Assembly: GCF_964194025.1 (NCBI RefSeq)
Contig: NC_134475.1
Coordinates: forward strand, 11,470,001 to 11,534,000
Source of the DNA: Convolutriloba macropyga
Taxonomy: Eukaryota
Direction: 5' to 3'
Length of the DNA: 64,000 nt
Every line of letters begins with the position of its first letter. The first letter of the stretch is position 1. A model generated the notes under the pieces. The model searched no databases. It was not told where the DNA came from and was given only the letters and a program-made list of their open reading frames with translations. A program made the translations under genes and the position numbers. Positions 4,112 through 48,901 of the stretch are shown here, piece after piece.

Positions 4112-4491
4112 GGTGCTAGGAAAATTGGCCGACAGGGCGTTTAGCCGACAAGGAAAAAATGAGAAATTTAGCCGACAGTTTTATCATAATTGGTAATAAA
4201 AGTCCATAATTGGTCCATAAATCAGTAGTTCGGTTGTGATAGATTCATATCAAGTCCCACGGGCCGCTGAGGCATGGCCATGGTAAAATACGGTGCGAGC
4301 ATGGATAGACGTTCGTTACACTACTTGATGAAAAAACTGCGGTATATATGTCCGCTTACGAAATAGTGTTTTAAATTGGCCAATCACAGCTTTAGAATAA
4401 GCTTTATTGCTCATATTACTTAAGTTGTCGGTTAAATTTCTCATTATTTGGTTGTCGGCTAAACGCCCTGTCGGCCAATACGGCGGCCACC
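4112..4491. mobile_element. Mutator (MULE)-like MITE
   Basis: GGTG...CACC ends, long imperfect TIRs (TTGGCCGACAGGGCGTTTAGCCGACAA and its reverse complement), perfect 9-bp TSD GAGAGTAAG (4103-4111, 4492-4500). Confidence 0.85.
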
Positions 4492-4614
4492 GAGAGTAAG
4501 CTAAAAGGGAATTGGGCTTTTAATCCACTGCACCTAAAGAACTGCAAACTTTTAGGGTGCCCGGATATTAAAGTCACCGCTAGCTCATTGATCACTAGTT
4601 GATATTGTTAATAG

Positions 4615-4928
4615 GGTGAACGCAAAGTAAGCCGAAGTAAAAGTAAGCCGACATAAAAGCAAGCCGAAAGTTATGTAATAGTTATGTAATCTATCAGAAA
4701 TAGCACATTGTTAACCGCTAACTGCGCCAAAGAAATAAAAATAGGTCAATTTTTAGACATCTAGTGGGTACGAGCCTCAGCGGACCGCTGTCCATGGCCA
4801 TGCCTCTCATCCGCTGTGGGATGTAATCCGGAAACCGCGGGCGGTTATCGCGGCGAAAATTTGTCGGCTTACTTGTCCTCATTTTCAAAATTCGGCTTGC
4901 TTGCCTATCGGCTTGCTAGACCGCCACC
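4615..4928. mobile_element. Mutator (MULE)-like MITE, second family
   Basis: GGTG...CACC ends, AAGCCGA/TCGGCTT subterminal repeats, perfect 9-bp TSD TGTTAATAG (4606-4614, 4929-4937). Confidence 0.85.
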
Positions 4929-7820
4929 TGTTAATAGATAGCTCGTCTTAACCAACACAGCTACATTTGAACTGAAACAAAACAACAAAACGGGAGTTAC
5001 CATATTCATAAAATTCAAATTTTTCCTTCATTTTAAGGGCACAAATTTGCTGTCCGGTCATTTACACCAACGTGACCTGAAGTTAAATGTACCGTCTATT
5101 AAATGCATGTATTTCAAATTTATATAGGCTACTTCGAAAAAACAGATATTTGAGTCTGTAAGCTCTAAGTATTCTTGTCAAATATTGAGAATTGAGAATT
5201 GGATATTGACGAGACTGCTCGGGAGCACCCAGCTTTTCATTAAAAGAAACCAAAAATTCCTAAATATGACCTAAAACGACAACAGAAATGGCAAAAACCG
5301 ATACTTTTTAAGTGACTTTTTAAGTAGATAGTTTGCAACGCGATAACGTTGCAAACTATCTACTTAAAAAGTCACTAAAAGTATGTAATTCATCAATACA
5401 GAAACATTTGGACCCGTCCTTAAAGAGACTAGGCGACTTGACAAGATGGAAAACAAAAAAAAAAACACGGGAAAAACTCCAAAAAGAACTTTTTCGCATA
5501 ATAGGTCAAGTAAATTCTCAAATTCCTTTTGACGGATATTGAAAATTGTTTTTTGAATTAAAACTTACTATAAAAAACTTATTTTGGGAACGCAGGTATA
5601 AGCTTCAATAATAGTTGCTAAGATTTGGTGAAGAATTTTGCGAACGCAGAAGTCAAACTGCCGCACCTGAAAACAAACTCTCAATAAAATTTTGTTCACG
5701 AAAAAAATTATCACTTGAAAAAATCTTGCTTTGGGATTCCTTGCGTGTTACTTTCATTGGCTACAACAAAATATTAAAACCACCAACCCAGTTCCAAGTA
5801 CATTAAAAAACAATCAAAAGCACGGGATTTTTGCGGAAATGACCATCGGAAGATCAAAAACTGCTGTGGGATGTAATCCGGAAACCGCGGGCGGTTATCG
5901 CGGCGAAAATTTGTCGGCTTACTTGTCCTCATTTTCAAAATTCGGCTTGCTTGCCTATCGGCTTGCTAGACCGCCACCTGTTAATAGATAGCTCGTCTTA
6001 ACCAACACAGCTACATTTGAACTGAAACAAAACAACAAAACGGGAGTTACCATATTCATAAAATTCAAATTTTTCCTTCATTTTAAGGGCACAAGTTTGC
6101 TGTCCGGTCATTTACACCAACGTGACCTGAAGTTAAATGTACCGTCTATTAAATGCATGTATTTCAAATTTATATAGGCTACTTCGAAAAAACAGATATT
6201 TGAGTCTGTAAGCTCTAAGTATTCTTGTCAAATATTGAGAATTGAGAATTGGATATTGACGAGACTGCTCGGGAGCACCCAGCTTTTCATTAAAAGAAAG
6301 CAAAAATTCCTAAATATGACCTAAAACGACAACAGAAATGGCAAAAACCTGAGCTTGAATTAATTTTTTTTTGATAATTACAAGAGTAATAAACAACCTT
6401 TTAAATATCATTCCGTAGTTAATTTTTGTCATTCAAAAAAAAAGCACAGCCCATGTTTTAAGTTAAGAGACGTAAGTGAGTCAGGGATCTTATAAAATAT
6501 GAAATCTTAATTCAAATTACTTTGGAACTGAAAATATTGGTCAGTTGTCTCCAGTTTTATCGTAATTTTAATCTTCAAAAATAGTCAAAGTGTTTAACAC
6601 GCACAGAAGTGGTACCCCTCACTCAGACCCCCCAAAAATTCGATATACTGAAAATGATGGACAATAATCACTAACAGATAAAATTGACAAAAGATATGGA
6701 AAATTTTTCGGCTTCTGCTCGATTCACCCCACCCCATGCTTGCTGGGCTCAAATTGTTTGAGCCCACGCTTCGGTGCACCAAATTTTTCTCCGGTCGCAA
6801 AATATTGTAAAAGATTAACAGAGCTTAGTTTTGACAGCCCCAATAAATTACAATACATATAAAAAAACAATCCTATAAATCCTTAACTTGTCATCAATGA
6901 AATTTTAAGAAATGAAAAAATTTGAAAACCAACGTTTTTTTTAAACCAGTTATTTTCATTTTCGGAAAACTTTAACTATCAAATAGAAATATTCAAGAAG
7001 TTTTCCCAGTTCTACAGAGTGGGGATTGTATTTTATTAACGCTCTTAGGACATTAAGAAGACAACAAATGCGGGAAAAATTCCATCTCAATAACTTTTTG
7101 ATATATAAAAATAGAGCAAACATCATTCGAAAAAAAAACTAACATCTCAGAATTTATAGAATAAATATCTCTGCTTCTTTTGCAGCAAACAATAGTTGTA
7201 ATGAGGCAAAATGAAATTTAAAAAAGATAAATAATATGGAAACAACAATTTTTTCAAAAAAATCTGTAAAATTGTAACAACACAACTTATAGTTACGGCG
7301 ATAACGTTGCAAACTATCTACTTAAAAAGTCACTAAAAGTATGTAATTCATCAATACAGAAACATTTGGACCCGTCGTTAAAGAGACTAGGCGACTTGAC
7401 AAGATGGAAAACAAAAAAAAACACGGGAAAAACTCCAAAAAGAACTTTTTCGCATAATAGGTCAAGTAAATTCTCAAATTCCTTTTGACGGATATTGAAA
7501 ATTGTTTTTTGAATTAAAACTTACTATAAAAAACTTATTTTGGGAACGCAGGTATAAACTTCAATAATAGTTGCTAAGATTTGGTGAAGAATATTGCGAA
7601 CGCAGAAGTCAAACTGCCGCACCTGAAAACAAACTCTCAATAAAATTTTGTTCACGAAAAAAATTATCACTTGAAAAAATCTTGCTTTGGGATTCCTTGC
7701 GTGTTACTTGCATTGGCTACAACAAAATATTAAAACCACCAACCCAGTTCCAAGTACATTAAAAAACAATCAAAAGCACGGGATTTTTGCGGAAATGACC
7801 ATCGGAAGATCAATAACTGC
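4813..7820. repeat. Complex local duplication A-inv-B-A-C-B
   Basis: A = 4813-5299 and 5863-6349; B = 5340-5864 and 7298-7820, both near-identical pairs. 5301-5340 is an inverted copy of the start of B. Confidence 0.9.
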
Positions 7821-22350: not shown

Positions 22351-25350
22351 CGTCCTAGAAAACTTCTACATGGACGATTACCTAGAATCGGTGGAGTCCC
22401 CCTGAGAGGCCTCTCAATAGATCGAAAGAATTGGTGCAATTTCTCCATCTAGGTGGGTTCAAGCTTAATAAGTTTGTAAGCAGTGTACCAAATCTGGCTG
22501 ATCAAATTGATGGTCACCGCAGTCCACCAAACCAAAAGTAATCGCGTCATCTAAGGAGGAATATTCGCATGTGCTCAGGATGAAATGGGATCACAACAAT
22601 GATACTCTAGACGTGAGTCGAGGTATCTCCAATACAGTAACTAAGTCTTTAACACAACGCTTGGCACTGAGCCTAGTGTCTATGGTATATGATCCCATTG
22701 GTCTAGTGGCACCATTTACAGTTGGTGCTCGATTGTTACTAAGAGACATTTGGCGTGTCCGTGGGCAGCTTTGGGATGAAGAGCTACCGAAAGGCACAGT
22801 AGAAAAGTTCCTCGAATGGAGTGAAGAACTACCCAAGCTTGCAGAAATTACTATATCGTGGAGCTGCTTTTCGGCAAACTTTGAACACTTGGAACTACAA
22901 ATTTTTGGCGATAGTTCGCAAGAAGTCTCCAGTGCTGTTGAATTTCTCCGACCTTGGTTAAATACTTCCGGTGGGTCCCAAACGGAGCTTCCGTTTGTCC
23001 TGGGTAAAACTCGCGTAACACCTGTGAAGGTCATGACAGTTCCAAAGCTGGAATTACAGGCGGCGCTATTGGCCGCTCCATTGAAATACCTGCCGAGCTC
23101 TTACATTGAAAACAAATAAGGTTTCCATGTGGACCAACAGCACTAGTGTCTTGCAATGGCTTAACTCTACAATCAAGCAGACAATATTTATTGATAACCG
23201 TGTTTGCGAGATCTGTAAACACTCTAGTGTTGACGAATGGAACCACGTTGCCTCAAGCGATAACCCGGCAGACGCCGGTACTCGTGGTATATCCGCTGGG
23301 CTTTGCAATAAAGTAGCTGGGTGAGGGATCCAGATTTCCTAAGAACCAAGCAATTCCCGTTCAATCCAAATAGGGAGGTAGTTAAAAAAATCAAACTCGG
23401 TATAGTAACCAAAGAAATTGAGGATACTAACACATCATTGGCGGCATCCGCAACTAAGTCAACTAACGAACCGCCCCCGCAACTAGTCCCCTTCGATAAG
23501 TTTGGTTCTTATCAAAAATTTCTTCGAATAATAGCATACATACTCCGGCTCTTACCTTCGCATGAATGCTACCGTAAAATCGATGGTAGTATAATAGATC
23601 CCACTGAGTTTGTAAAACCGAGCGCCATCTGCAGTATCTCGTTCAAAGAGAATCTTTTCCTTCCGAAAAAAAAGATCTCCTGGAAAACTAATGCGGTAGT
23701 TGGAGTAGCCGTGTTGTCCCGTTTTCCCTGTTCATCGGACCAAATGGTCTAATCCGCTCGGCTGGCCGTATCAAACAGCTGGTCGAAGTAGATTATGATG
23801 TAAAACATCCTATCGTTCTTGACGCATCGCATGTGTTCGTAAAGGTGTTTCTCATAATCACTTGAAAAACCATCATCAGGGCGTTGACTATCAGCAGGCT
23901 AAAATACAGGAACGTTATATCATCCGTAAGTTACGATTTTCTCTGCGTTCGATTAAAAACAACTGCGTCACTTGCAGAGTGATCCGCGCTGTCACTAACC
24001 AACCCATCAAGGCTGACCTCCCATTAGAAAGACTCCCATACCCGTCTACTCCCTTCACGAACACCGGGGATGACTACTTCGGTCCATTTTAAGTTACTGT
24101 ACGTAGGAATACCGAAAAAAGGTGGGGATTCCTCTTCACATGCTTGACTGCTGGTGCCGTTCATGTTGAAATCGTTCCGTCCATGGACGCCAGTTCGTGT
24201 GGAAAGTGAATGAATCTCCCGTTGGGGTACACCAGCAATTATTTGGTCTAATAAGGGTACTAACTTTGTTAGTGCGGAAAAAGAACTACGCGAGAACATC
24301 GAAAAGTGGAACACCATCAACATCGCCGTTGTATTTGCCCAAAAAAGGCTTTAAGTGGAATTTCAACCCGCCCATGCGCCTCACCAGGGTGGAAAATGAG
24401 AGAGGCTAGTACGTAGTTTCAAGCGAATACTTTGCACTATCCTTGGTACTCGTCGCCTCACCGACAAAGTTTCGAAAACTACTTTTTGTCTGATCGAACA
24501 TGCACTTAATTCACCTCCGTTAACGCCCGTAAGCGCCAACCTTTCCGATCTAGCCGCATTAACACCTAATCATTTTCTCCTTGGTAACCGAGCAAGTAGT
24601 GTTCCTTCCATCATTGGTCTAGATGAGTTTGATCACCGTAAGTGGTACGCCCGCGCACAGTCTTACTCTAATACCATTTGGCCCCGTTGGATCAAAGAGT
24701 ACGTCCCGGAGCTGCACCGACGTTTCAAGTGGCAAACGCCTGCTGAGCAACACATAAAGACTAATGAATTGGTTTGGGTAGTTGAAAAGACCGACCCCAG
24801 GGGTTGCTACCCTACTGCTTGGCTTACTGAACTCCTTTACGTTATCGACAGCGTCGCACGCTCCGCCGTCTTGCGCACGTCCACGTTTTCACTCGTCCGC
24901 CCAATTAGTGCCCATTTTCCCAATATCTTTTTCTATGGCGGAGGATGTTACTGAGTAATTAAGTACGCAACAGAATATTATCCAATCAGATTCAAGTGAC
25001 AAAATGCGTACCGAAATTGTTCCGATTTACGTATAAGGCCCGGAAAAAGCGCAAATAACATAATTTCAAGTAAATCTAATCATAAGACCTGTCAAATAAG
25101 ACAAGACTCAGCTCAATAATTTTCGGTTTTTTGGATTTATCGGTGCGCAATGGTGACCTGCTTTGAACTCATGCATGAAAAACAGACTGATACCAGCCAA
25201 ATGAACAAAAAAAACTTTGTCTTCCGAAAACACTTGTTGCTATATTCGTACCAATGTAAAAACGTTACATCGTCGTTTTTATATTTTTATGTGCATTGTG
25301 AAAAAGACTGAATTGAGCATCCGAAAGCGTGTTTGTTTTACAACTTCATA
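22223..25350 (+). mobile_element. BEL/Pao LTR retrotransposon, internally deleted and decayed (RT C-half, RNase H, integrase, 3' LTR)
   Basis: FGAKDSPTCANYAL, NFYMDDYL, YDPIGLVAP, IFGDSS, TVPKLELQAA, NPADAGTRG, HH..CVTC, PFTNTGDDYFGP, LTPNHFL. PPT GGCGGAGGA then TGTTACTGAGTAA at 24946; same 13-mer at 22223; ATTAG at 22218-22222 and 25351-25355. Confidence 0.9.
24946..25350 (+). repeat. Putative 3' LTR of the BEL element
   Basis: Starts TG directly after the PPT. End inferred from the ATTAG TSD; terminal dinucleotide reads TA rather than CA. Confidence 0.6.
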
Positions 25351-32466: not shown

Positions 32467-33578
32467 TTATTGGCACAAGTTTTGTTCGTAGCAGTCTATG
32501 GTTGGAATAGAAAGATGATTTTTAAAGATATTTTCTGGATCGAACTTCGTTTTGGCGGTCATAACTTCGTATTTTGACTCGCCGTAATGGAAATCCATCA
32601 TACCAACATGACCACCTTGATCGGACCGACCGTGTGATGCGTCTTCGTATCCGCGGTACGAGTAGTTGGTATATGGTCGCAAAATATCCCAAAACTCAGC
32701 CTGAAATTTTTGAATTAGGGTTGCTTTCTCGGGTGTATCGCCTCGTTTTGGATATGTTGTAAATATTGCCCTGCATCCCTTGCCTTTGTACACGCCATAC
32801 ATTTCATCAGAAAATGTGTTACCGCCAAAAAGCTCAACATTTGTACCAATGTCCGCTGGAAGGAGCTGTTTTCTGTATTTGGGATGAAAATAGTGTTTTT
32901 CTAATTTTTCAAATACCTCCAAGGGTACGTGGTCAGTACATATGTAACCACTGGTGACACCATTGTACTCGCTATTCGTGTGTTCTCGATAATCTCGAAG
33001 CCAGGTGGACTTTGGGTTTACCGATTTGGAGTATGCGTGGGCGCCGTAAGTATATTTCCATAGGTCCGTGTAGGGCACTTTAAAAATGTTGGCTGAAATA
33101 ATATCTACACCACGCTTTTTGGCATCGTCGACTAAGTTTTGTACTACCTCATTTTGGAGTGTACTGTTGCTGAAAAGTTCGCCAGTCAATGCACCCTGAA
33201 CCAAAGTGAACTTATCAAAAAGATATGTGTATATGTACATCATATCATCGGATAACGTGTCTGCAATTGACACGAAGTAATGCAACCATTCTCCTGTTGA
33301 TTTGGGATCAATTTTGATTCTCAGGAACCCGTACATTGGTTCTAAAGGTCCAAGTTTTAAAGTTACATGAGTAATTATCCCGAAGGAAGAGCCACCCGTG
33401 CCTCGCAGGACATCAAACAAGTCACGGTTCTCGTCAAAAGAAGCGTTGACGACGTCTCCAGTCGGCAGAACGACTTCGTAGTTGAGCACTGTGTTTATCA
33501 TAACGCCGTATTTTCGTGTCGTGAATCCAGTCCCGCCTGTTGAAGACAGTCCACCAATGCCGACATCTGGACAATCTC
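32467..33578 (-). CDS. BBE-like FAD-linked oxidase, last exon (rest of FAD-binding domain, substrate domain, C-terminal BBE domain)
   Basis: Acceptor CCAG|GA joins in phase 1 to give G-DCPDVGIGGLSSTGGTGFTTRKYG. Also DLFDVLRGTGGSSFGIIT and KTKFDPENIFKNHLSIP. Open to the stop at 32467. Confidence 0.92.
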
Positions 33579-34003
33579 CTGGTGGTCATAAATATTCACA
33601 GTGATATCGGATCAGATCAAGTTACAAAGAATTCTTCGTCAAAATTTCATTTATGATGTTTATGTGTTTAATGAACACCTCTTTCATTCGCTTTTTTTCC
33701 TTCTTTCCTTTTTTTGCCCCCTTCTCTCCACAATTCTTAGATTACCAATCTGATAGCCCCCCCCCCCAGAAATTCAATTTCTGTTACTTATTGATACTTG
33801 TTATGATAATGGTAATATGCCAATACAGAAAAAAGCCAGCGGGAACGCAAAAAATATTTCATTGTACGCGTATAAAGGATTTTTAAATCATAAAAGGCAA
33901 GCGTCAACACTACTGTAGGTCCTAGTAATGACGTGTGACTATTAATTAGCCAATTAGTTAAAAAGCTCCAACCAAAGTACCAATTTCGAAAACAAATGCT
34001 TAC

Positions 34004-34235
34004 CTCCAATTACCAGCAGTTTGTATTTTTCAAGCGCTTGATAAGCTTCGCCAACTCTCACCCCCACACCTAAAACTACTTCTTTCTTCTTCGGCTTCAC
34101 AGATATTCGTCGCATTCGCTTCATGTCAACAATGAAACCGTGCTCCACAAAGGAAGTGCCTCCGAAGCTGTGAGCACCTGAACGCACTCGAAAGGGAACC
34201 CTCGCCGGTTTGCTGCCAGCCAGACATTTGACAAC
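34004..34235 (-). CDS. BBE-like FAD-linked oxidase, internal exon
   Basis: TTAG|GTT acceptor, GAG|GTAAGC donor; encodes VVKCLAG...FRVRSGAHSFGG...IVDMKRM, with the RSGxH FAD-histidine motif. Confidence 0.92.
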
Positions 34236-34310
34236 CTAAGAGCCAACTTTATTATTCCCCTGAGATATTTTTAGTTCTAATATAAATAGTTGGTATATAT
34301 CTACATTAAT

Positions 34311-34440
34311 GGCGTGATAACCGAGAGGTAAGGTGTGTGATTGACACGCCAATGATTGAGAGTTCGATCCCCTGCTTCCGTGAAGCTGTCTGTGTGGGGA
34401 ATAGCACTTACTTAACCATAGCTTTAGGTTGACCATAGCG
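34311..34440 (+). mobile_element. tRNA-derived SINE-like element in an oxidase intron
   Basis: A-box-like TAACCGAGAGG and B box AGTTCGATCC (34361), followed by a non-tRNA body; 3' end approximate. Confidence 0.55.
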
Positions 34441-35006
34441 TGACCAATGTTGGCTGTAATAATGGTACCACGTGAAAATATCAGACGCAAAAAATTGGCC
34501 ATAGTCACCAAAAAAGAGCATTCATGCTCACAAAATGAACAGGGTGAGATATGGCGAATAATTGAAAAAGGACAATTAAAAACAGGTTACTGTTAATGCA
34601 GATTAAAAAGCTTAATGCTGCTTCGCTGCGATTAAGCAGAAACAAATTAATATTATTATTATTATATCAAGTTCATTAGTTGATGCCCTCGTTTGTTTTT
34701 AAAAGAATTCTTTGTTTTTTTTTGCACAGAATGTTGCGAGTTCTCCGCAAAAAAACATTCCATGAAAATTCACCGCCCTTGGAAACTCATCTCCTATTTT
34801 CAGGTAAATTTTAAGTATTTTTCAGGTGTGTTCAGGTGTGGTTCAGGTGAGACAAATCTACCTGAACTGTTCAGGTAAGTTCAGGTGTTTTTTCAGGTAA
34901 ATTTACCTGAACTTTTTTTTGGTTTGTATCCGCGATGCTTGTTTTTAAACTCGAATTTCTGCCTTTGCTTTTAATACTGACTTGAAACGGGGATTTGCGA
35001 ACTGAC

Positions 35007-35162
35007 CTTGACTGTTTCCTTTGTGTCAATAGGGAAGACGAATCCTGGAGTAAGTTTACACAGTGAACATGATCCTGCATCTTTGAGGTAGTAGACGTTG
35101 ATGTCTTCAGAGTGGAGACAATCAACTATGTGGCTGTAGTTCTGTGGCACCTCACAGTAAGT
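35007..35162 (-). CDS. BBE-like FAD-linked oxidase, upstream exon (absent from the ORF track in this frame)
   Basis: TTCTTCAG| acceptor, AAG|GTCAGT donor, 156 nt, phase 0/0: TYCEVPQNYSHIVDCLHSEDINVYYLKDAGSCSLCKLTPGFVFPIDTKETVK. Joins VVKC to give the family pattern P..v.P....v..vvk. Confidence 0.8.
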
Positions 35163-35383
35163 CTGAAGAAAATTTGCATCTTTTCAACAATCGCACCCGC
35201 TTCTAATCTTTACTTAATGCTATAACACAAAAAACTCGAGATTGGCGAATAAGCATTCGATCAAGATGAGATAATATCAGGGTCAGGACGGTACCGGACA
35301 GCTGTTTACATCCGTGCAAAAAATGTGGCTATGCCCTCCGACTAGTCAATAAACCGCTCATGCAAATTGTATTCAAGAATTAC

Positions 35384-35434
35384 CTCACTTTTTACAATAG
35401 GGGAGTCAATATTGTCAAAAATATCAGAACGCGT
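35384..35434 (-). CDS. Possible 51-nt further upstream exon of the oxidase
   Basis: TTTTGATTAG| acceptor, GAG|GTAATT donor, phase 0/0, encodes TRSDIFDNIDSPIVKSE; no homology support. Confidence 0.35.
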
Positions 35435-35759
35435 CTAATCAAAACCAATTAACACTAAAAAAAATCTATTTTGCAAATAGGGCATATCGATATAAACCAG
35501 GAATCAGTTTTTGTATTTATATAAGTATGCAACCTAGGATTGTTATTGTTCATCTTAAGCATCCCAATATAACCCCACACTTGTGTTAACGACGATTCAA
35601 AAAACCTCTCAATTTAGCCTAATGTCCATGATGATAAAAACGCTATTAATGTCACTTTCGGATCAGTACCTCAAAGTGTGATGGGAAAGCCACAAGCAAG
35701 TACTCCACTTTGTGTAGGAACGTCCTTTGGGAGTGAGTATTTTATAAAAAAAATATTTT

Positions 35760-38700
35760 TCACTAAAAGTTGCCTAAGATTTAAAATCCCTTTTCCATTT
35801 ACTTCTCTCTCTTTCCTTTTTCTCTTAACCTTACACTTCAGAAGTCTTTTAAATCCACTTCTTTCTTAGCTTAAGCTTTTTAATTAGTTTTTTAAAAGTT
35901 GCTCTCTCCTTTACTATAGAGCATTTAGACTTCTTAACAAGGTTAGCTGCAAATTTTTTTTATTTGGAAAAATTGTCCGCATCTAGCCTCTATAGAGAAC
36001 AATGGAAACTTCAGAGCCTCATTGAGGCTGATTCTCAACATGAGCCAAACTGACAGCCTTTTATCTGAGGCCAGAATGACAGCAGAAGAATCAACGCAAG
36101 ATGAAAGCAATTTTTTTTGAAGTGCGAAACAAAAGAGAACGTTTCAGAAAACAAATGCCCACCTGACCAACAACGTAAGACCTATGATTGTTTCAATTGA
36201 TCCAAGACCATCACAAATTGAGTTTGCAAGAGCAATAAAGTCGAATTTTCCAGCCGTTAATTCAAGCAAATGAGAGAACTGAAGAACAATACCGATTTTT
36301 TTATTCAACCAGAGGACCTTGCTTCAAGAGAATTCCTAATGCTGTCACTAAACCTAAATCAAGCCTTTCCAAATGCCAAAGTGAATGCCAGGAACACACT
36401 TCCTCAGCCGAAAACTAAAGCAAGTGTTGTCATTGTAAACGTTCACCACAGCATTACTGAAGATGAGGTAAAAGAAGAACTCCTAACCAACAACGAAATG
36501 GATGTCACCAAAGTGTCACGAATAACAAGTCGAGCAACCAGTCCACCAACAAAATTAATACGTGTGATTACAGAATCAAACCATCAAGTCAATGCAGCTC
36601 AAAAACAGGGCGTCAAAATAGGCTGGCAGCTACACCGATGTGAAACAAGCCGAGAACCACCACATGAATGCGCCAACGCAACTCGATGCCTTCGCTGCTC
36701 GCAAGATCATAGTGTTAAAGAATGCGCTGTTGCAAAACAAAACGCCAAAAGCAAAAAATTGTGGTGGTACTCATGTGACAGTTTATCGAGGGTGTCTAAC
36801 ATGTCAGCAGAAATTAGCAGAGGCCTCGAAAAAGATAAATGAGAATAAATTCTCAGCTGTAGCCAACAAATTGAAACCTCATGCAAACACTGAGCTAACG
36901 CCAGGAACGGAAAAAAATTGCTCTTCTGGTAGTTGAAGTTCTGAGGAAAATTCGAACAGTTCTTAACACTATGTCTTACAGTGATATAGTAAATATTGTC
37001 TCTAACAGCGCCTCACGCATCTTCAATAAAAAAAATAGATGGCCAAAGAATACATGAGAGCATTAAAAGCGCGCATACAGCTCCTTTCATTTCAATGCAA
37101 TCAAACAACCTAACAAGTAGCCAAAACTTTTCGCGAAATGGATAACCTCAAAACTTTGCAATGGAACTGTCGCGGCCTCAACAACAAAACAAACGATCTG
37201 ATTCTAATTTCAGCAGAAGCAGACATAGATGTAATTTGCTTGAATAAAGTTAGAATTGGAAGAAATCAATACCCCTCAACACCTACATCGTTGCGACGGA
37301 AAGCTGCAACAACGTTCATCATGGTTCTGCCATCTTAGTGAAGAAAAGCATTGTTGCGAACAGAACCAGTAGAAAAAGAAACCGATAGAAATGGTTGAAA
37401 CACATGGTCGAACAATTGAAACACTGAAGCTTTGCCTTAGGTTGCCCTTTTTGATGAGTTTTAGATAATAACTGTTTACAATTCCCCTGGAATGCCGCTG
37501 TCGTCCAAGAAAATATTTTCAGGAAAGTTGAAAAATGTCTTTTTATGCGGCGATTTCAATGCTCCCCACCCAGAACTGAACTGCTCCTATGATTCTGAAA
37601 ATGGAGAAAAGATTCCAAAAGTTATTGACGAGGGCACTTTTAAACTGCTGAAGACGGATATCACACATCACACATATCAGTCATCTGACGGAAAATGCAA
37701 AAATATGTTAGATCTGCATTTTTGCGATAATTCACTCCTTACAAATTTTAAGGATTTTCAAGTATCAGAAGATCTAGGCAGTGATCACTAAATTACAAAT
37801 ACAACAATGAACCTAAGAAGAAGCAAACTTTTTCAGCTAAAATCATAAATCAACTACAGGAAATTTAGACAAAACACGCTAAAATTTTAAAGATCATAAA
37901 ATCTCTGGCCTGCGAAGTATCCAAAAAAGGATGAAATAATTCAGTTCAGCAATAGCTTAGTTGAAATAATACACAAATTTCTCGAAGACACCTGCATTAA
38001 CAGGAAAGTGTTCCCCTACAGTGTTGAGACACAAAAATTGATTAAACTGAAGAGAGGAAGGCGAAGAGAGCTCAAAACTGCAGTTGGCGATCACTTTATT
38101 TCTTTAAGAAAGGAGATAAATTACCTATAGAAAAAAATTAAACGTTCCATGAGGCGGTCAGATGAAAGAAAAAGAACAAAAAATCTCGGAAAGTGCTTTT
38201 GACGGACAATGACGGATAAAATTTGCTACAAACTCCCTAAAGATTTTCCTAAAAATGTTGAAGTCCTTGCCTGTATGCTCATATCTAGCTCAATTAATAA
38301 CTCGTTTGTTTTAGTTAACTGGAAAGATTCCCAAATTAAAAGGATAAAAAAGGAAAACAAAGACCAATCGAAGGCTGAAAACTACCGACCCATTAGTCTT
38401 ACAAATTGTTTAGCCAAAATATGTAAAACTGTTGTAAAAAACATTGTTATGGAACATTGTGAAAGTCAAAATACATTCGGCGAGACTCAGAGCGCTTACA
38501 TGAAACACCACCGCACCACAGACAACCCGTCACACAACACGTCAGTGAAGCCCTCCAGTGCTCCGAAATGGTTGGTTTTGTATGCTTGGATGTCGATAAA
38601 GCGTTTGATTCTGTATGGCGCCTAGGACTCGTTCACAAGCTAAATTCGATTGGGCTAAATAATTCAGTTATAAGGTGGATAAATTCTTTTTTATCGCAAA

Positions 38701-39820
38701 GGAACTTTGTTGTGAAGATAAATTCTACTGTCAGTGATAGTTTCAATCCGTCAGTTGGAGTACCTCAAAAGAGCGTAATTGCTCCAATCCTCGTTCTCAT
38801 ATACGTTAGACGTTTGCCTAAAATAGAAGCCCAGATCTCACAGTTCACTGATGACTTTGCACATTACTATAGGTCGCGCTCCCCCAAATTAATTCAAAAA
38901 CATCTACAATCATCGCTGAACAGCCTAATTGATTGGTGTTACTCACTGAAATTTAAATTAAATCCAAACAAAACTCATTACCTGATATTTAAAAACCCGT
39001 CAAAAGAAAAAATTTCCTTTTGAACTCCACATAAAATGAGTATTAATTCAGAAGACACAATCGATAAAACTCCTTGGCATCACTTTCACTCCACACCTCA
39101 AGTTGAGTGAACATTGCAAAGATCTAGTACGAAGAAAGAACAGCAGGCAATTTCAACTCTGGAAGCTTAGTAATCTAAACGTTAATGAAAAAAGTCTAAT
39201 TTTGGTCTACATATCTTGGGTCCGACCTCTTTTTTTTTGTACTCAAATGCTTTTTGGCTGGATCATTCACATTCCCTTATCAATAATATACAAAACATGC
39301 AAAACCGAGCTCTACGAATTGGCCTTGGAAAACCAAGATGGTACCAGGTACAGAAACTCCACGAAGAGGCAAACATGAAGTCAGTGAGAGAAATGCAAAT
39401 TAAATTGGACAACGGGTATATTCAAAGAGCAGTAAAATACAACATATTCTTTGTATTAGAATTGATATTTAAGGAACAACAGCGCCCGCTCAACTCCTGC
39501 AAAAGCACTCTTGACCATCTCCAATACTAAATCTTCTAGCCGCATACACCAAAGAGTAGTGGTTAAAATGACTGCCTATAATTGTGATCAACTATACAAA
39601 ATGAGGATCAATCCCAGTTCATTCGCTGAAATTCAATATCAATGATCATAGTCGATCAAACAACAGAAATGTGCTCGAAGACAGAAGAAATGCAAGAACT
39701 GAGAGCACAAAAAGGAAAATAGGGAAAAACGGAAAAATCCAAGCACAACAACAAACTGAAAAACAGAGAGACAGACAGTGCGAAGGAAACACAGGCAGCC
39801 AAATAAACAAAAATCATAAA
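35760..39820 (+). mobile_element. Decayed near-full-length Jockey/I-group LINE (gag-like ORF1 with zinc knuckles; APE-RT ORF2)
   Basis: ORF1: CLRCSQDHSVKEC, CGGTHVTVYRGC. ORF2: LQWNCRGL, CGDFNAPH, GSDH, NYRPISLTNCLAKI, LDVDKAFDSVW, GVPQKSVIAP, QFTDD. Linker apparently shortened near 38200; ends approximate. Confidence 0.88.
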
Positions 39821-42800
39821 AAATCATTATCGAATGACTCAGTTGTGAAGAGCACAAAAATGGTTCAATAAAGTACACACAACTACCGTTCGAGTCCAAC
39901 GCCAGCAACTTTATATTTATTTTTGTGAGACGTTTCTTCCATTCATTAAATTGCAACAAAATTCTAACTTCTTGAAGAGTAGGAAAGTGGCGCAGTAGTT
40001 AACAAATAGTGGAAAAATTAACGGAAGAACTAACTTTATTTTTTCTCTCATCAGCGGTTCTCAGTTACCTCCAATATTCATATTATTCCTTTTCTCTCGG
40101 CTATTTAAAAAAACACTATATGAAAAGCATCATAATAATCAGACGTGATAAGAGTATTTGGCCAACCGCTCGCCTAATCGATTCGGGGCCAAGTACAACT
40201 CAGTCATCGTCAATTTCTGTCCATCTCGTTCCCTTCTCTCTATCTGTTCAGCCAGCCACTCGCCTAGTCAATTCGGGGTTGAACAGATCGCAGCTTTCAT
40301 TAATGTCTTTTTGCGTAAATAATAACCAACTGTTGCGCCTTCTTTTGATACTTTTCATTACTTCTCTCCTTACATTTTACTATTTTCTTAAACACTGTCA
40401 GATCAAAAACAAACAAAAACTTTCACTATTGTGCTGAGCGTGGTTTGATTTCAGTGGTTTTATGGTTTAGGTTAGCGTAGCACTTTTAACAATTTATCAG
40501 TTTTTTCAATTTTTGTTCATGGCTTTTTCAAGTCAGAAAAAACGCTTTTACTTATTAATTTTATCCCTCTCTTTAATAATCTTAACCGTTTCTGCCATCT
40601 CCTCAATCTTTTTCAACATCAAAGCAGGATCATCCAAAAACATAACCAGTGATCTAGTCCCCAGCCATAATGGCATCAGACGGAGAGTTAAAATAATTGA
40701 AAGAAAAGCAGAATTTTTGTGTATTGTACAAGACACTTAGCGCAGTCCCCTAATACAACATCAGAACTGGGCGCTTCTGTTCGAAACCTTCCAAATCAAT
40801 TTGCTGAGCTCTATTTTAACTTTGCGACGAATTGAACATTGAAAGAACGAAGCATTAAAACGAAAAACTTACAGCTATATAAGTCAACGTAGTGCAGTGA
40901 ACATTCACCAAGAAGAAACAGAGCTTCAACACGAGTGGTTTCGGGTCCCAAATACGCCCTTTGAACTTTTAAGATTTTACTATTCAATTTTTTCAATTAT
41001 TTTTTTGTTTCGTCATACTTACCCGAAGAAATTGTCTCAATCTTTAACACAATTTCCACGAGGCTAGCCGAGGAAAAGAGGCACTATAATTTTTAAACAT
41101 CAAGTTCAGCCAGCAGAAGTCCTCCACGGTTTTTGAAATGGCTGAGTGCATCCAAGGCAGAGGAAGTTTTTTTACTGCAGTTAGATAGAACAATCAGTTT
41201 TAACAAGATTTTCACAAACTCAATTTTATAAACTCAAACTCTTCTTACTGTGTATTTAACTTTTGTCGCCTCTGGTTGTACATAAATTGTATTGTATATA
41301 GGTGACGATTCAAAAAAAACCTCTCACACTTTTCAAAAAAAAATTTAAATCATAAGAAAATAAAATTCTTTTGATTATACTGAGGACATTTAAGTGATTT
41401 CTTTTTGAGGTTGAATAGTCTGCCCTTATATGAGAGAAAGTAAATAAAATACATCAGACTGATAAAAAAAGTATTTTGAAAAGATTAATAGCTACTTATT
41501 GTTGGTTTCCTAAACAATCAACAGAGGTTTTCAGGAGCATTTGATTTTTACCAGCAGACAACCATCATAAAATCGCTGACTTTTTAAATGTGCAAATCAG
41601 TGCTTTTTCATACAAAAACAAAATCCAACGGAATTCAAAATATAAGTGGAAATAATATCTGTAAAAATAATAACATCTAGTTATTTCTTCTTTTTTTCAG
41701 TCAAACAATATCAGAAAAATCGGAAATACAGTTGAATTACTATAGGTAATTACTGAGATAAATTACCTATAGAAAAAAATTAAACGTTCCATGAGGCGGT
41801 CAGATGAAAGAAAAAGAACAAAAAATCTCGGAAAGTGCTTTTGACGGACAATGACGGATAAAATTTGCTACAAACTCCCTAAAGATTTTCCTAAAAATGT
41901 TGAAGTCCTTGCCTGTATGCTCATATCTAGCTCAATTAATAACTCGTTTGTTTTAGTTAACTGGAAAGATTCCCAAATTAAAAGGATAAAAAAGGAAAAC
42001 AAAGACCAATCGAAGGCTGAAAACTACCGACCCATTAGTCTTACAAATTGTTTAGCCAAAATATGTAAAACTGTTGTAAAAAACATTGTTATGGAACATT
42101 GTGAAAGTCAAAATACATTCGGCGAGACTCAGAGCGCTTACATGAAACACCACCGCACCACAGACAACCCGTCACACAACACGTCAGTGAAGCCCTCCAG
42201 TGCTCCGAAATGGTTGGTTTTGTATGCTTGGATGTCGATAAAGCGTTTGATTCTGTATGGCGCCTAGGACTCGTTCACAAGCTAAATTCGATTGGGCTAA
42301 ATAATTCAGTTATAAGGTGGATAAATTCTTTTTTATCGCAAAGGAACTTTGTTGTGAAGATAAATTCTACTGTCAGTGATAGTTTCAATCCGTCAGTTGG
42401 AGTACCTCAAAAGAGCGTAATTGCTCCAATCCTCGTTCTCATATACGTTAGACGTTTGCCTAAAATAGAAGCCCAGATCTCACAGTTCACTGATGACTTT
42501 GCACATTACTATAGGTCGCGCTCCCCCAAATTAATTCAAAAACATCTACAATCATCGCTGAACAGCCTAATTGATTGGTGTTACTCACTGAAATTTAAAT
42601 TAAATCCAAACAAAACTCATTACCTGATATTTAAAAACCCGTCAAAAGAAAAAATTTCCTCTTGAACTCCACATAAAATGAGTATTAATTCAGAAGACAC
42701 AATCGATAAAACTCCTTGGCATCACTTTCACTCCACACCTCAAGTTGAGTGAACATTGCAAAGATCTAGTACGAAGAACGAACAGCAGGCAATTTCAACT

Positions 42801-45376
42801 CTGGAAGCTTAGTAATCTAAACGTTAATGAAAAAAGTCTAATTTTGGTCTACATATCTTGGGTCCGACCTCTTTTTTTTTGTACTCAAATGCTTTTTGGC
42901 TGGATCATTCACATTCCCTTATCAATAATATATAAAACATGCAAAACCGAGCTCTACGAATTGGCCTTTGAAAACCAAGATGGTACCAGCTACAGAAACT
43001 CCACGAAGAGGCAAACATGAAGTCAGTGAGAGAAATGCAAATTAAATTGGACAACGGGTATATTCAAAGATAGGTAAAATACAACATACTCTTTGTATTA
43101 GAATTGATAATTAAGGAACGACAGCGCCCGCTCAACTCCTGCAAAAGCACTCTTGACCATCTCCAATACTAAATCTTCTAGCCGCATACACCAAAGAGTA
43201 GTGGTTAAAATGACTGCCTATAATTGTGATCAACTATACAAAATGAGGATCAATCCCAGTTCATTCGCTGAAATTCAATATCAATGATCATAGTCGATCA
43301 AACAACAGAAATGTGCTCGAAGACAGAAGAAATGCAAGAACTGAGAGCACAAAAAGGAAAATAGGGAAAAACGGAAAAATCCAAGCACAACAACAAACTG
43401 AAAAACAGAGAGACAGACAGTGCGAAGGAAACACAGGCAGCCAAATAAACAAAAATCATTATCGAATGACTCAGTTGTGAAGAGCACAAAAATGGTTCAA
43501 TAAAGTACACACAACTACCGTTCGAGTCCAACGCCAGCAACTTTATATTTATTTTTGTGAGACGTTTCTTCCATTCATTAAATTGCAACAAAATTCTAAC
43601 TTCTTGAAGAGTAGGAAAGTGGCGCAGTAGTTAACAAATAGTGGAAAATTTAACGGAAGAACGAACTTTATTTTTTCTCTCATCAGCGGTTCTCAGTTAC
43701 CTCCAATATTCATATTATTCCTTTTCTCTCGGCTATTTAAAAAAAACACTATATGAAAAGCATCATAATAATCAGACGTGATAAGAGTATTTGGCCAGCC
43801 GCTCGCCTAATCGATTCGGGGCCAAGTACAACTCAGTCATCGTCAATTTCTGTCCATCTCATTCCCTTCTCTCTATCTGTTCAGCCAGCCACTCGCCTAG
43901 TCAATTCGGGGTTGAACAGATCGCAGCTTTCATTAATGTCTTTTTGCGTAAATAATAACCAACTGTTGCGCCTTCTTTTGATACTTTTCATTACTTCTCT
44001 CCTTACATTTTACTATTTTCTTAAACACTGTCAGATCAAAAACAAACAAAAACTTTCACTATTGTGCTGAGCGTGGTTTGATTTCAGTGGTTTTATGGTT
44101 TAGGTTAGCGTAGCACTTTTAACAATTTATCAGTTTTTTCAATTTTTGTTCATGGCTTTTTCAAGTCAGAAAAAACGCTTTTACTTATTAATTTTATCCC
44201 TCTCTTTAATAATCTTAACCGTTTCTGCCATCTCCTCAATCTTTTTCAACATCAAAGCAGGATCATCCAAAAACATAACCAGTGATCTAGTCCCCAGCCA
44301 TAATGGCATCAGACGGAGAGTTAAAATAATTGAAAGAAAAGCAGAATTTTTGTGTATTTTACAAGACACTTAGCGCAGTCCCCTAATACAACATCAGAAC
44401 TGGGCGCTTCTATTCGAAACCTTCCAAATCAATTTGCCGAGCTCTATTTTAACTTTGCGACGAATTGAACATTGAAAGAACGAAGCATTAAAACGAAAAA
44501 CTTACAGCTATATAAGTAAACTTAGTGCAGTGAACATTCACCAAGAAGAAACAGAGCTTCAACACGAGTGGTTTCGGGTCCCAAATACGCCCTTTGAACT
44601 TTTAAGATTTTACTATTCAATTTTTTCAATTATTTTTTTGTTTCGTCATACTTACCCGAAGAAATTGTCTCAATCTTTACCACAATTTCCACGAGGCTAG
44701 CCGAGGAAAAGAGGCATTATAATTTTTAAACATCAAGTTCAGCCAGCAGAAGTCCTCCACGGTTTTTGAAATGGCTGAGTGCATCCAAGGCAGAGGAAGT
44801 TTTTTTACTGCAGTTAGATAGAACAATCAGTTTTAACAAGATTTTCACAAACTCAATTTTATAAACTCAAACTCTTCTTACTGTGTATTTAACTTTTGTC
44901 GCCTCTGGTTGTACATAAATTGTATTGTATATAGGTGACGATTCAAAAAAAACCTCTCACGCTTTTCGAAAAAAAAAATTAAATTATAAGAAAATAAAAT
45001 TCTTTTGATTATACTGAGGACATTTAAGTGATTTCTTTTTGAGGTTGAATAGTCTGCCCTTATATGAGAGAAAGTAAATAAAATACATCAGACTGATAAA
45101 AAAAGTATTTTGAAAAGATTAATAGCTACTTATTGTTGGTTTCCTAAACAATCAACAGAGGTTTTCAGGAGCATTTGATTTTTACCAGCAGACAACCATC
45201 ATAAAATCGCTGACTTTTTAAATGTGCAAATCAGTGCTTTTTCATACAAAAACAAAATCCAACGGAATTCAAAATATAAGTGGAAATAATATCTGTAAAA
45301 ATAATAACATCTAGTTATTTCTTCTTTTTTTCAGTCAAACAATATCAGAAAAATCGGAAATACAGTTGAATTACTA
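38113..45376 (+). repeat. ~3.63-kb near-identical tandem duplication (LINE RT half plus downstream flank)
   Basis: 38113-41742 matches 41755-45376 with scattered SNPs and indels; 12-nt junction insert. Confidence 0.95.
41755..43460 (+). mobile_element. Duplicated 3' half of the Jockey/I-group LINE
   Basis: ORFs 41851-42267, 42210-42665 and 42745-43020 mirror 38209-38625, 38568-39023 and 39103-39378, with the same frameshifts. Confidence 0.9.
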
Positions 45377-47607
45377 AAAAAAAGAAAAAAAAAAACGATT
45401 TAATTCTCTCTAACTCTTGAGATTGAGACCCTTAACCTATCAATACAATAGTTTTCACCTTGGACTTGGAATGCACCAGACTCTGATAGACGGTACAAGG
45501 CAAAGACAAAAATAATTTGTAGTTCTTCGGAAAATTCAAGTAATTTCTTGATTCAAACAAAATTTGCACTATTGTTTCCTATCAAGTGTTTATCAAGTAT
45601 TTTATCAAGTGCACCAAATGCATCCCAAAGTTATTTTTTTGTTTGATGCTTGCAAACCTGAATATAATTTAAAGCCATTCAAGTTCTCAAAACAAAATTA
45701 TTAGGTATAGTTATGCCAAGAGGCCTTGCTTATGATGCTTATTGGTCATATATTTCTGCTCAGCTCTATTTTATATATCAGTCAGAAATTGATTGTTAAG
45801 ATCTACATCAACATTTTCGGCAAAATAAATTATACCTCTGATAACCACAAAGCAAATAATTTGGGCTAGAAAGGAAATTAAAGAAAGGAAAATGTACAAT
45901 TTTAAAACCTAATCCGGTTTAAAAGCAGTTCGTGTTTCATGTAATTTATATATTTTTTTAAAAGCAAAAACACTTTGATCTCCTTTCGCTTTTTTTTCAG
46001 TTTAAAAGTCAAGCAAGTAAAAGTCTTAAGATACATGGGCAAAAAGTCAGCTCGGAATTTTTTTTTCAGATGTCAATAAATACTTGTGTTGGTATTTTTA
46101 TGAGTCGGTACTTCATTTTTGTCGTAAGATTTTTACTGTTTGATGACTCTCATATTCGCAAATTTATTCACTCAACAAAACTACTGATTCTTATTGCCTT
46201 AAAATCAGTGTGAAAAATGACGAAATAATTAAAAGTAAAATGTTGCCGTTATTGAGGTGTTGCAACGTTTACTTTACCAAAAACAAGTTCACCATTTTTT
46301 CTCTGCGATGTAATAGGTTCGACAAAATTGTCACCGTCTCATTTTAAAAAACTCGAAATAGGCCCGAAAAACATTGTTAGAAAAGCAAATGCCTGTGTCT
46401 TTCGATGATTTTTTATTTTGTCTTCATAAAAACATCTGTGCTCTTTTTTTTCTTTTTCGCCTGTTTTAGGTCAAATTTCTTCCAAAAAAATGCAAGCGAG
46501 CCTCCTTTTTAAACCAGTTTCCAGGAATTGAACAAATGAGAATTTTGCGTTTTTCAGAACAATTGGATCCGTGAATGTCTTTAATGTCTCCTTAATTCAA
46601 TTCTTTTTTAGTTTACTGGAGAACGCTCTCCACTTCATAGGAAAAGATTGGGTTGGTCAAGTTTGGCTCCGTTTTCTTAAATGTTCAAATTTTTCTTATT
46701 TTCCATTTTTCTGTTTGAATTTGTTTGAACCAGTTTAAAAAGCAAAAAAGTCTTCCAAAAATGCATTTGAAAGTCTAATTCTCTTTTTTTTTTGTAACTC
46801 TTTTTCATGTAACCTTTACTATTTAAAACTGCTTAAAAATTAACTGAAATATCAAATACAAATTTAGATGATTTTAAGTTAAATTTCGCATTTTTCAAAA
46901 ACGTACATATCTGTTTTTTTGTGAAATATAAATTGTTGGATTTGTGATGATTTTTTTTAAAGTAAACTTCAATGAACAAGAGAACATGATACTAAAAGTT
47001 ATTTGTAGGTTTAGGCAGCTTTCAGTCCTTCTTATCTTTTTGGAAAAAAAACTGATGCTTCATTTTTTAACTAAAATTTATGTTTGCTCTTGCAGATAAA
47101 GAACAATGCAAGTGAAGTCGGACTTAATAATGTTTTCAAATATGGCATTGTAAATTCAAAATTGCCCTATTTCAGCTATTGATAAATCGCGACTTCTTCG
47201 CCAGTCCTTTTATCTTCCATCAATTTCCTTTGGTGTTTTCCTTCAATTTAATTTTTTCTCAATTAGAAATTTTTTAAATTTCAAAATGAAATTAAATGCA
47301 GCAGCTAATGATAACGCGTTGTTTTTTGATGAAGCAAAAAACTTTTAAAAATTGACCCAAGGATAAAGATTCCTATTTTTCGAGAAATATCTGCCACTTG
47401 TTTGGTGTTTTAATTCATTTTCAAAAGCGGAATTTTATTGTTTTCAAGGCGCCATCAGAATATCCCCATCATCGAAAACAAAAAAGTTCAGATTTGTGAA
47501 TATTTCCTCTGATGGTCTGAATCCCAATCCGAATGATACAAAATCAAATTGCTGCTTTGGAAGAGTAAACATTGAAATCTTTTCAAGATCTTTTGCAATT
47601 TTTAATT

Positions 47608-48147
47608 CGGTTAGAGCGGAAAATTTTGGACGGTTAGAGACGGAAAATTTGGTTAGAGACGGAAAATTTTGGACGGTCAGAGACCAAAAATTTGGTTAGA
47701 GACGGAAAAATTTGGATGGTTAGAGAAGTAAAATGTTGGACGGTTGGAGACGGAAAATTTTGGACGGTTAGAGACGGAAAATTTGGATAGAGACGGAAAA
47801 TTTTGGACGGTTAGAGACGGAAAATTTGGTTAGAGACGGAAAATTTTGGACGGTTAGAGACGGAAAATTTTGGACAGTTAGAGACGAAAAATTTTGTTAC
47901 AGACGGAAAATTTTGGACGGTTAGAGACGGAAAATTTGGTTAGAGACGGAAAATTTTGGACGGTTAGAGACGGAAAATTTTGTTAGAGACGGAAGATTTT
48001 GGACGGTTAGAGACGAAAAATTTGGTTAGAGACGGAAAATTTTGGACGGTTAGAGACGGAAAATGTTGGACGGTTAGAGACGGAAAATTTTGGACGGTTA
48101 GAGACGGAAAATTTTGTTAGAGAATGAAAATTTTGGACTTGTTAGAG
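47608..48147. repeat. Minisatellite of 24-bp and 19-bp units
   Basis: CGGTTAGAGACGGAAAATTTTGGA (24) interspersed with GGTTAGAGACGGAAAATTT (19). Confidence 0.95.
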
Positions 48148-48556
48148 CAGATAACTACAAAACAAATGCTCGGTTAGAGTTTAAAATGTCTAAATTCTAC
48201 AAAAATGCTACCATCTTTGTTTATGTTCAATATGGATTGAGGGAAAGGAGCAAATGATATTTGTCACAGGACAGCATGCATCTCTGATGAGAACCCCCTT
48301 TATGTACAGAAGGTGAGGAAAACCCTACTTTTTAATACTTATTACATTTATATGATAGTGCAGTTTCCCATGGGAATAACTTGAACTATGAGATTTTTTG
48401 ATAACTTTTTCTTGCAAATTTGATGAATAATTAATTTGTGCCAGATGCATTCAAATTTATCAAAATTTTTTCTTCAACTTGCTTAGATATCCTTAAAAAC
48501 TATTAAGAAACCCTCATATTTGATCTGAGTTTAAGCGCATCCGAGTTCCTTTAGCT

Positions 48557-48901
48557 TCAAAGTTTTATGGGCCGAGCAAACTCTTCAAACATATCACCGT
48601 TAAATTTTAAAGTTGTTTTCCGAATTTCAGTCAGCAGTTTATATCTAATCAAGTCAGGAAGACTATTTGTAGTAACCTTTTTAAGCATGCAGATGGAATC
48701 GTCCAATTTGGAGTAATCAATTTCATCAATTGCAACCATCTGCTCCATTTTTGAGACTGTGCCTGATTTTGTCTTTTCAGAGGAAAAATTCTGGTAAAAT
48801 TCTGAGAATAAATAAAACCTAACAGCAATAAATAAAGTTATAAGGGAGTATAAATAGTATTTTGTTTTCGAATTTTTGGGTTTTATCGACTTTTTAGCCA
48901 T
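48557..48901 (-). pseudogene. N-terminal fragment of an unidentified, probably decayed gene (basic N-terminus plus signal-anchor-like segment)
   Basis: MAKKSIKPKNSKTKYYLYSLITLFIAVRFYLF; 114 codons, then protein-like but stop-interrupted sequence. Confidence 0.3.

Follow-up and report, generated by a model that had tools for sequence, protein, structure and literature searches.

Introduction

Berberine bridge enzyme (BBE)-like flavoenzymes are described in one account as a plant, fungal and bacterial family (PMC4898691). Here we describe a BBE-like gene of an animal, the acoel Convolutriloba macropyga, found on the minus strand of contig NC_134475.1, positions 11,470,001 to 11,534,000. This 64,000-nucleotide stretch is called the window below, and positions are those of the window. 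We consider it likely that the locus is a functional four-exon nuclear gene, and that its product would be a type II anchored, bicovalent, O2-reactive BBE-like oxidase belonging to a fast-diverged clade of convolutid acoels.

The cellobiose oxidase PpBBE1 of Physcomitrella patens (PDB 6EO4; PMC6001459) has the same two-domain VAO-type fold as the model of the acoel protein, with a Foldseek template modelling (TM) score of 0.74. The His, the Cys, the gatekeeper Val and the catalytic Tyr of PpBBE1 all align with residues of the acoel protein, and both are proteins of the secretory pathway, the acoel one by prediction. The roles of H111, C172, V175 (the gatekeeper permitting fast reaction with O2) and Y461 in PpBBE1 were shown experimentally (PMC6001459). 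The two proteins differ in that sequence similarity is recognisable only in the flavin adenine dinucleotide (FAD) domain and the last 30 residues, and in that the acoel protein has Gly for the Asn of the Y/FxN motif, a predicted signal-anchor exon and a cysteine-rich N-terminal stretch. The fungal AA7 oxidases GOOX (1ZR6), ChitO (6Y0R) and XylO (5K8E) are of the bicovalent His and Cys type and have an open, carbohydrate-oxidase-like fold to which the acoel model is similar (TM 0.73-0.76). They are extracellular, as the acoel protein may be. However, identity in the structural alignment is 17-20%, the residues of the substrate groove are not conserved, and the acoel protein is known from sequence alone. 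Berberine bridge enzyme of Eschscholzia californica (3D2D), which gave the family its name, carries bicovalent FAD at H104 and C166, has a C-terminal BBE domain and matches the acoel model with a TM score of 0.75. In plant BBE-like oxidases the signal peptide is cleavable and the Y/FxN motif unaltered, and no sign of alkaloid chemistry was seen in the acoel case.

Bacterial relatives gave the best sequence matches. When the full-length acoel protein was compared with PDB sequences, 54 distinct BBE-like matches were obtained. The best were marine bacterial BBE-like flavoenzymes (9P1O, 9P1R and 9P1P; 103 bits for 9p1o), and PpBBE1 scored 97 bits. These three entries are tied to the Clz9/Tcz9 study through its abstract and not entry by entry (PMC12632287). 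In large protein collections the best matches were uncharacterised bacterial tandem BBE genes (P0009, P0102, P0126, P0156 and P0201), at 109 bits with a single sequence and 135 bits with a profile. In contrast to the acoel gene, these relatives have no introns and no membrane anchor; they are about 25% identical to it end to end, and P0201 lacks the Cys site.

Structure of the gene

Three minus-strand exons (35162-35007, 34235-34004 and 33578-32467) join into a single in-frame stretch of 1500 nt, comprising 499 codons and a stop. All splice boundaries are canonical (...cag/ACT, AAG/gtcagt, ttag/GTT, GAG/gtaagc and ccag/GA). The original prediction, made from the window alone, had proposed these three exons with an uninterrupted frame of about 500 amino acids. 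They proved exact to the base, but the first exon of the gene (48901-48677) and the membrane anchor that it encodes were missing from that model.

Up to residue ~90 the three-exon frame lacks a methionine, and the acceptor at 35162 is preceded, 7 codons away, by an in-frame stop. A missing exon was sought upstream. For this search, 29 kb upstream were compared with the upstream region of a paralog in the same genome, and the locus of the acoel Symsagittifera roscoffensis was read in all frames. An additional first exon was located 13.5 kb upstream of the three-exon model. Its start at 48901 is the first start codon following an in-frame stop, and its phase-0 GT donor falls at the identical codon in the window gene, the paralog and the S. 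roscoffensis gene (exon 1 at L005:1507..). The acceptor and phase of exon 2 are likewise kept in the paralog and in S. roscoffensis. The gene has the following features.

48677..48901, minus strand: exon 1, 75 codons, with the start codon, a six-lysine tail, a hydrophobic helix and a poorly conserved stem; phase-0 GT donor.
48794..48859, minus strand: predicted transmembrane signal-anchor helix, codons 15-36, preceded by MAKKSIKPKNSKTK; hydropathy maximum of the protein.
35163..48676, minus strand: intron 1, 13.5 kb, with antisense retrotransposon fragments and a tandem repeat.
35007..35162, minus strand: exon 2, codons 76-127, cysteine-rich N-terminal segment of the putative lumenal part.
34004..34235, minus strand: exon 3, codons 128-205 with a phase-1 end, first half of FAD_binding_4.
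32467..33578, minus strand: exon 4, codons 205-574 and the stop, rest of the FAD domain, substrate-binding domain and BBE C-terminal domain.

The four-exon product has 574 amino acids and matches residue for residue the RefSeq protein XP_075251448.1, 'FAD-linked oxidoreductase DDB_G0289697-like' [Convolutriloba macropyga]. This entry and those of the S. roscoffensis orthologs (XP_063718213.1 and XP_063713013.1) are automatic predictions with a name derived from similarity. The equivalent of intron 1 in S. roscoffensis is only ~430 bp long; the intron reaches 13.5 kb in the window because it has been enlarged by antisense retrotransposon fragments.

Other candidates for the 5′ end were rejected. 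Extension of exon 2 past 35162 was ruled out as a start, the stop codon lying 7 codons upstream and the sole nearby ATG being out of frame. A conserved patch at 47538-47454 was an intronic repeat and not an exon. A narrower blastn comparison (12 kb of the window against 7.7 kb upstream of the paralog) returned the known exon only, and exon 1 was not found by it.

A predicted membrane anchor

Type II signal anchors have a basic N-terminus followed by a long hydrophobic helix, and exon 1 appears to encode this arrangement. AlphaFold2 modelled residues 15-36 as a helix followed by a low-confidence stem. The stem comprises ~40 poorly conserved residues and leads into the cysteine-rich stretch. The layout of tail and helix is shared by the S. 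roscoffensis protein and by the genomic exon 1 of the paralog. The protein also has ten additional cysteines, of which four, in the exon-4 part, do not vary. These and its five N-glycosylation sequons would fit a catalytic domain in the lumen or outside the cell.

Domains, predicted fold and aligned residues

The N-terminal, PCMH-type Pfam domain FAD_binding_4 (PF01565) was matched in exon 3 with 44.4 bits and in exon 4 with 30.5 bits (cut-off 26.4). At the C-terminus, the BBE domain (PF08031) was matched with 22.1 bits (cut-off 20.6), over profile positions 18-45 only, and the orthologs P0004 and P0005 have precomputed PF08031 matches. The C-terminal BBE domain and the motifs RSGAHS and GDCPDVG, on which the family assignment had first been based, are all present, the domain marginally so. 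The residue columns were checked in an alignment of 72 sequences that includes 67 distant relatives, and the key positions are these.

34170..34172, minus strand: codon of His149 in RSGAHS, candidate 8-alpha-N1-histidyl FAD site, aligned with PpBBE1 H111.
33562..33573, minus strand: codons of Cys207-Pro-Asp-Val210, candidate 6-S-cysteinyl FAD site and oxygen gatekeeper Val, aligned with PpBBE1 C172 and V175.
32647..32658, minus strand: codons of Tyr512-Arg-Gly-Tyr515, Y/FxN motif with Asn changed to Gly; Tyr515 aligned with the catalytic-base Tyr461 of PpBBE1.

The candidate His and Cys sites of a bicovalent enzyme, as proposed at the outset, both fall at the proper aligned positions. The His149 column, which is that of the His in the R-S-G-G-H-S motif of the bicovalent subgroup, contains His in 66 of the 67 distant proteins. 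Cys207 follows His149 by 58 residues, which fits the spacing of the family (~60 residues, G-x-C-P-x-V-G motif), and the five acoel sequences all share an unchanged GDCPDVGIGG. The gatekeeper, three positions beyond the Cys, is Val210 and not Leu or Ile. Within the acoel clade, W-x-ILRPYTNYSYRGYED varies at its second residue only. Tyr515 aligns with Y461 of PpBBE1, and any equivalents of the partners of that Tyr, the activating Asp396 and Gln424, would fall in the divergent substrate domain.

The AlphaFold2 model of the exon-4 part had a predicted local distance difference test (pLDDT) value of 90.8 and a predicted TM (pTM) score of 0.90, and the full-length model was confident from residue ~113 onward. 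The best 50 PDB matches found by Foldseek with the exon-4 model were BBE-like or closely related VAO-type flavoenzymes (E down to 2e-17, TM ~0.75), with BBE, pollen-allergen glucose dehydrogenases, SorD and chito-, gluco- and xylo-oligosaccharide oxidases at the top. Model and matches agree in a VAO-type two-domain fold with a seven-stranded substrate sheet. The protein is probably a divergent, membrane-anchored, bicovalent BBE-like oxidase.

Duplication and selection in convolutid acoels

The paralog, LOC142335279, lies on another chromosome, C2 (C2:41860060 onward, its exon 1 at C2:41860003..), and is 84% identical to the window gene in the full-length alignment and 82% in exon 4. Between these two C. 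macropyga copies the nonsynonymous divergence (dN) is 0.091 and the synonymous divergence (dS) 0.362, a ratio of 0.25. S. roscoffensis has two orthologous genes, encoding XP_063718213.1 and XP_063713013.1, and an ortholog is also present in a third sample. Intron positions are common to the genes of C. macropyga, S. roscoffensis and the third sample. Between species the proteins are 53-61% identical and the frames are open at saturated dS. Within C. macropyga, heterozygous variants were found in exon 4 at 32974, 32989, 33477, 33487, 33508 and 33514, at about one third of the depth in all four DNA runs; five of the six are synonymous and one changes Glu239 to Lys. The dN/dS of 0.25, the open frames and shared introns despite saturated dS and the mostly synonymous allelic variants indicate that the gene is under purifying selection.

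In the trees, all five acoel sequences group in a single clade with full support, and the duplications within it are specific to each species. The gene duplicated independently in Convolutriloba and in Symsagittifera. The RefSeq model of the paralog, XP_075239826.1 (521 aa), begins at an internal Met, and the genomic exon 1 upstream of it encodes an intact in-frame MAKK tail and hydrophobic helix; the annotation of the paralog probably misses part of the 5′ end. One S. roscoffensis contig (L004, ERZ25071366) carries two copies of the last exon, at 3924-5057 and 5965-7098, which lie 2 kb apart and encode the same protein sequence. A second S. roscoffensis assembly (L005) has a single copy, and the pair stems either from a tandem duplication of very recent date or from an error of assembly.

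Relatives and origin of the gene

In an exhaustive HMMER search of 1.84 billion representative proteins, the acoel cluster scored 505 bits and the best other single-sequence match 109 bits. Most of the non-acoel matches span only 80-130 residues of the FAD domain encoded by exon 4. Distant relatives were taken as the best 150 of 7,096 matches, few of which could be named. Those that were named, or typed by gene context, came from bacteria, fungi, an amoebozoan and a plant, and none from an animal. With an acoel profile the best outsider was P0201 (135 bits, 25% identity over 77% of the protein), which sits beside bacterial genes. ESM Atlas searches by feature and by shape returned only generic BBE-like clusters from plants, ascomycetes and bacteria. 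The gene did not nest in a broad animal clade of known function, an outcome that would have spoken against the original prediction; as far as these data reach, it is restricted to convolutid acoels.

The stem of the acoel clade is ~1.8-2.0 substitutions per site, and two trees gave it different neighbours. In a quick tree of 109 rows, its sister clade was bacterial, with BBE genes in tandem or fused and a Flavobacteriaceae protein among its members (Shimodaira-Hasegawa-like approximate likelihood ratio test, SH-aLRT, 88). In a careful tree of 53 rows, the acoel clade joined a long-branch unknown and then fungi, with a bootstrap of 28, and the program flagged a long-branch join. The bacterial relatives that joined the acoels in the quick tree occur as adjacent BBE-like gene pairs (L015, L016 and the P0126 contig) or, in P0009 (1118 aa), with two domains fused in one protein.

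A possible origin, short of a probable one, is ancient horizontal transfer. The ancestor of convolutid acoels would have acquired a BBE-like gene from a bacterium (or a fungus), and the gene would then have gained three introns and an exon for a host-type signal anchor and diverged fast. The labelled matches among the best 150, with no other animal present, the bacterial setting of P0201 as the closest full-length relative and the sister clade of the 109-row tree are consistent with transfer, and an anchor on a separate exon is as expected of a later addition by the host. However, the placement was not robust to the 53-row tree, and a stem of such length makes long-branch artefacts likely. When 185,579 genomes of bacteria and archaea were scanned for the signature motifs of the acoel proteins, 23 pattern matches came up, none of them a relative; no donor-like sequence emerged, and the view of distant matches is limited to those 150, few of them nameable.

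Vertical descent appears unlikely. It would mean that the acoel lineage kept an old BBE-like gene, of eukaryotic or opisthokont age, which evolved fast there and was lost almost everywhere else in animals. In its introns, composition and secretory-pathway architecture the gene is entirely like one of the host, and nothing points to a recent arrival. The careful tree sets the clade, loosely, beside early-diverging fungal sequences, and the automatic RefSeq name points to a Dictyostelium protein as the best curated match. Yet the fungal neighbourhood has next to no support, the gene would have to have been lost many times over in Metazoa, each time independently, and no homolog above 109 bits was found outside convolutid acoels among the 1.84 billion representatives.

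The domesticated horizontal transfer first suggested for this gene was not borne out as such: transfer and patchy retention could not be distinguished with so long a stem and with neighbours that shift with taxon sampling. Because the 109-row and 53-row trees disagree on the sister group, we name no donor and lean only slightly towards an old transfer over patchy retention.

Proposed activity and alternative explanations

If the gene product acts as a membrane-anchored bicovalent oxidase, the lysine-rich tail and hydrophobic helix would insert it as a type II membrane protein, and the catalytic domain would face the secretory lumen or the cell exterior. FAD would be doubly tethered through His149 and Cys207. 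A C-H beside an alcohol of the substrate, most plausibly a sugar or another secondary alcohol, would give a hydride to the flavin with the help of Tyr515. Since the gatekeeper is Val210, the reduced flavin would be expected to be re-oxidised by O2, with release of H2O2.

Several observations weigh against this assignment. In the window gene (the C8 copy) the N-terminal helix holds an Arg, and the helix could alternatively be a long cleavable signal peptide. The score of the BBE domain barely exceeds the Pfam cut-off. The family-defining Y/FxN motif, which lies in the BBE domain at the FAD site, is altered in all five acoel sequences, in which Tyr512 is present and Gly514 takes the place of the Asn; in the same column of the 67 distant relatives, Asn occurs 56 times and Gly 7 times. 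Because the substrate-binding domain lacks close relatives, the class of substrate can only be guessed at. The proposed membrane topology, flavin attachment by covalent bonds and reactivity with oxygen are all read from the sequence, and no transcript-derived protein of the acoel BBE-like family was present in the protein collections searched.

Some of these points would also suit the same fold with another chemistry, that of a tailoring cyclase or dehydrogenase of specialised metabolism, or of an enzyme acting on amines, in place of a sugar or alcohol oxidase that makes H2O2. The best PDB sequence match (9p1o/9p1r, 103 bits) is a marine bacterial natural-product flavoenzyme, EncM, THCA synthase and MaDS1 score near the carbohydrate oxidases, and a unique substrate domain and the replaced Asn of Y/FxN are compatible with such a role. 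We regard it as improbable, given that the gatekeeper Val and the conserved Tyr515 fit the pattern of oxidases and alcohol oxidation. No polyketide, terpene or nonribosomal peptide synthetase (NRPS) genes flank the gene in the window, where its neighbours are a DEG/ENaC channel gene and retrotransposons. The roles first put forward for it, in secondary-metabolite synthesis or H2O2-producing defence, are conjectural.

It is very improbable that the locus is a silent relic with an intact frame, untranscribed or non-functional. The lack of a transcript-derived protein in the searched collections would agree with a relic, but the paralogs have a dN/dS of 0.25, frames are open and splice sites kept across three species at saturated synonymous divergence, the allelic variants are mostly synonymous, and RefSeq models exist in two species. 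Contaminant or symbiont DNA misplaced in the animal assembly, for which one might cite a GC-rich unplaced scaffold (C2681, 56% guanine plus cytosine, GC) with a BBE-like open frame of its own, is refuted for practical purposes: the gene lies 11.5 Mb into a chromosome scaffold, in surroundings of ~31-39% GC (2-kb windows) against 56% for C2681, its spliceosomal introns hold the animal's own retrotransposons and high-copy repeats, a paralog sits on another chromosome, and the protein of C2681 is only ~29% identical and falls elsewhere in the tree. The locus is, as first proposed, an intron-containing BBE-like gene in metazoan DNA, and the anchored oxidase described above is the explanation that we prefer.

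Genomic context

The chromosome scaffold is 68.6 Mb long, and the GC content around the gene is like that of the rest of the window. The gene was found in four DNA runs from two samples; no intron-skipping joints were seen in these genome-sized contig sets, which are uninformative on expression. An exon of the DEG/ENaC gene (amiloride-sensitive sodium channel, PF00858) is located at 3228-3728 on the minus strand.

Intron 1 contains two reverse transcriptase (RVT_1) open frames on the plus strand, at 38568-39023 and 42210-42665, both of 151 aa and with near-identical RVT_1 matches. A gag-like frame at 36270-36842 (plus strand) in the same intron has a zinc-knuckle-like Cys/His pattern and no Pfam match. 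Further retrotransposon fragments are located at 1274-1804 and 22571-23119 (both plus strand), and overall the window holds three RVT_1 frames and one Pao-type peptidase. At ~47560-48130 (minus strand), intron 1 also has a long tandem array of units of ~24-27 nt (CCGTCTCTAACCGTCCAAAATTTT-like), which is absent from the intron of the paralog.

Two repeats of intron 2, at 34276-34587 and 34796-35003, are of very high copy number, with a summed k-mer depth of 10^4-10^5 versus ~30 for unique DNA. The first has a box like the T-arm of a transfer RNA (tRNA) (GGTTCGATCCCC-like) and may be a tRNA-derived short interspersed element (SINE); ARAGORN did not find a tRNA in it. The second lies among short 'ttcaggtg' repeats.

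The unplaced scaffold C2681 is 31 kb long, with 56% GC against ~33% for the animal. It carries an uninterrupted FAD_binding_4 frame of 487 aa, a GH18 fragment and a reverse transcriptase, and is probably DNA of the algal symbiont or of another eukaryotic cobiont left in the assembly. A symbiont represented by this scaffold was rejected as the donor of the acoel gene on the identity and tree position of its BBE-like frame.

Discussion

The gene adds a member, so far unstudied, to a known family of enzymes, and its host is unusual. It had been put forward as a candidate for new biology. A literature search on BBE-like enzymes of animals, gene transfer in acoels and the RefSeq name yielded no relevant paper, and none on an animal member of the family. 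It is less new than first assumed, as the exact protein is already in RefSeq under its automatic name. With that entry in place, an ambiguous origin and a substrate that is only conjectural, the value of the finding is limited.

A more specific scenario, which we hold to be doubtful, is that the ancestor of those convolutid acoels that bear algae captured a microbial BBE-like oxidase and joined it to a host anchor exon. The enzyme would now, at the secretory or cell surface, oxidise sugars or cell-covering fragments of the algae (Tetraselmis), or make H2O2 in mucus. If this is true, bilaterians would have their first described example of a bicovalent flavin oxidase tethered to a membrane. Such a use would also fill a gap in animals that are reported, in one account, to be without standard immune signalling pathways (PMC12849515).

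For the flavoenzyme field, the protein offers a very divergent substrate domain to characterise. One animal lineage keeps a BBE-like enzyme under selection, has duplicated it and has it joined to a predicted type II anchor. The study of acoels and their symbiosis gains a lineage-restricted oxidase that is predicted to enter the secretory pathway, and RNA sequencing data exist for symbiotic adults, aposymbiotic juveniles and pathogen-challenged animals.

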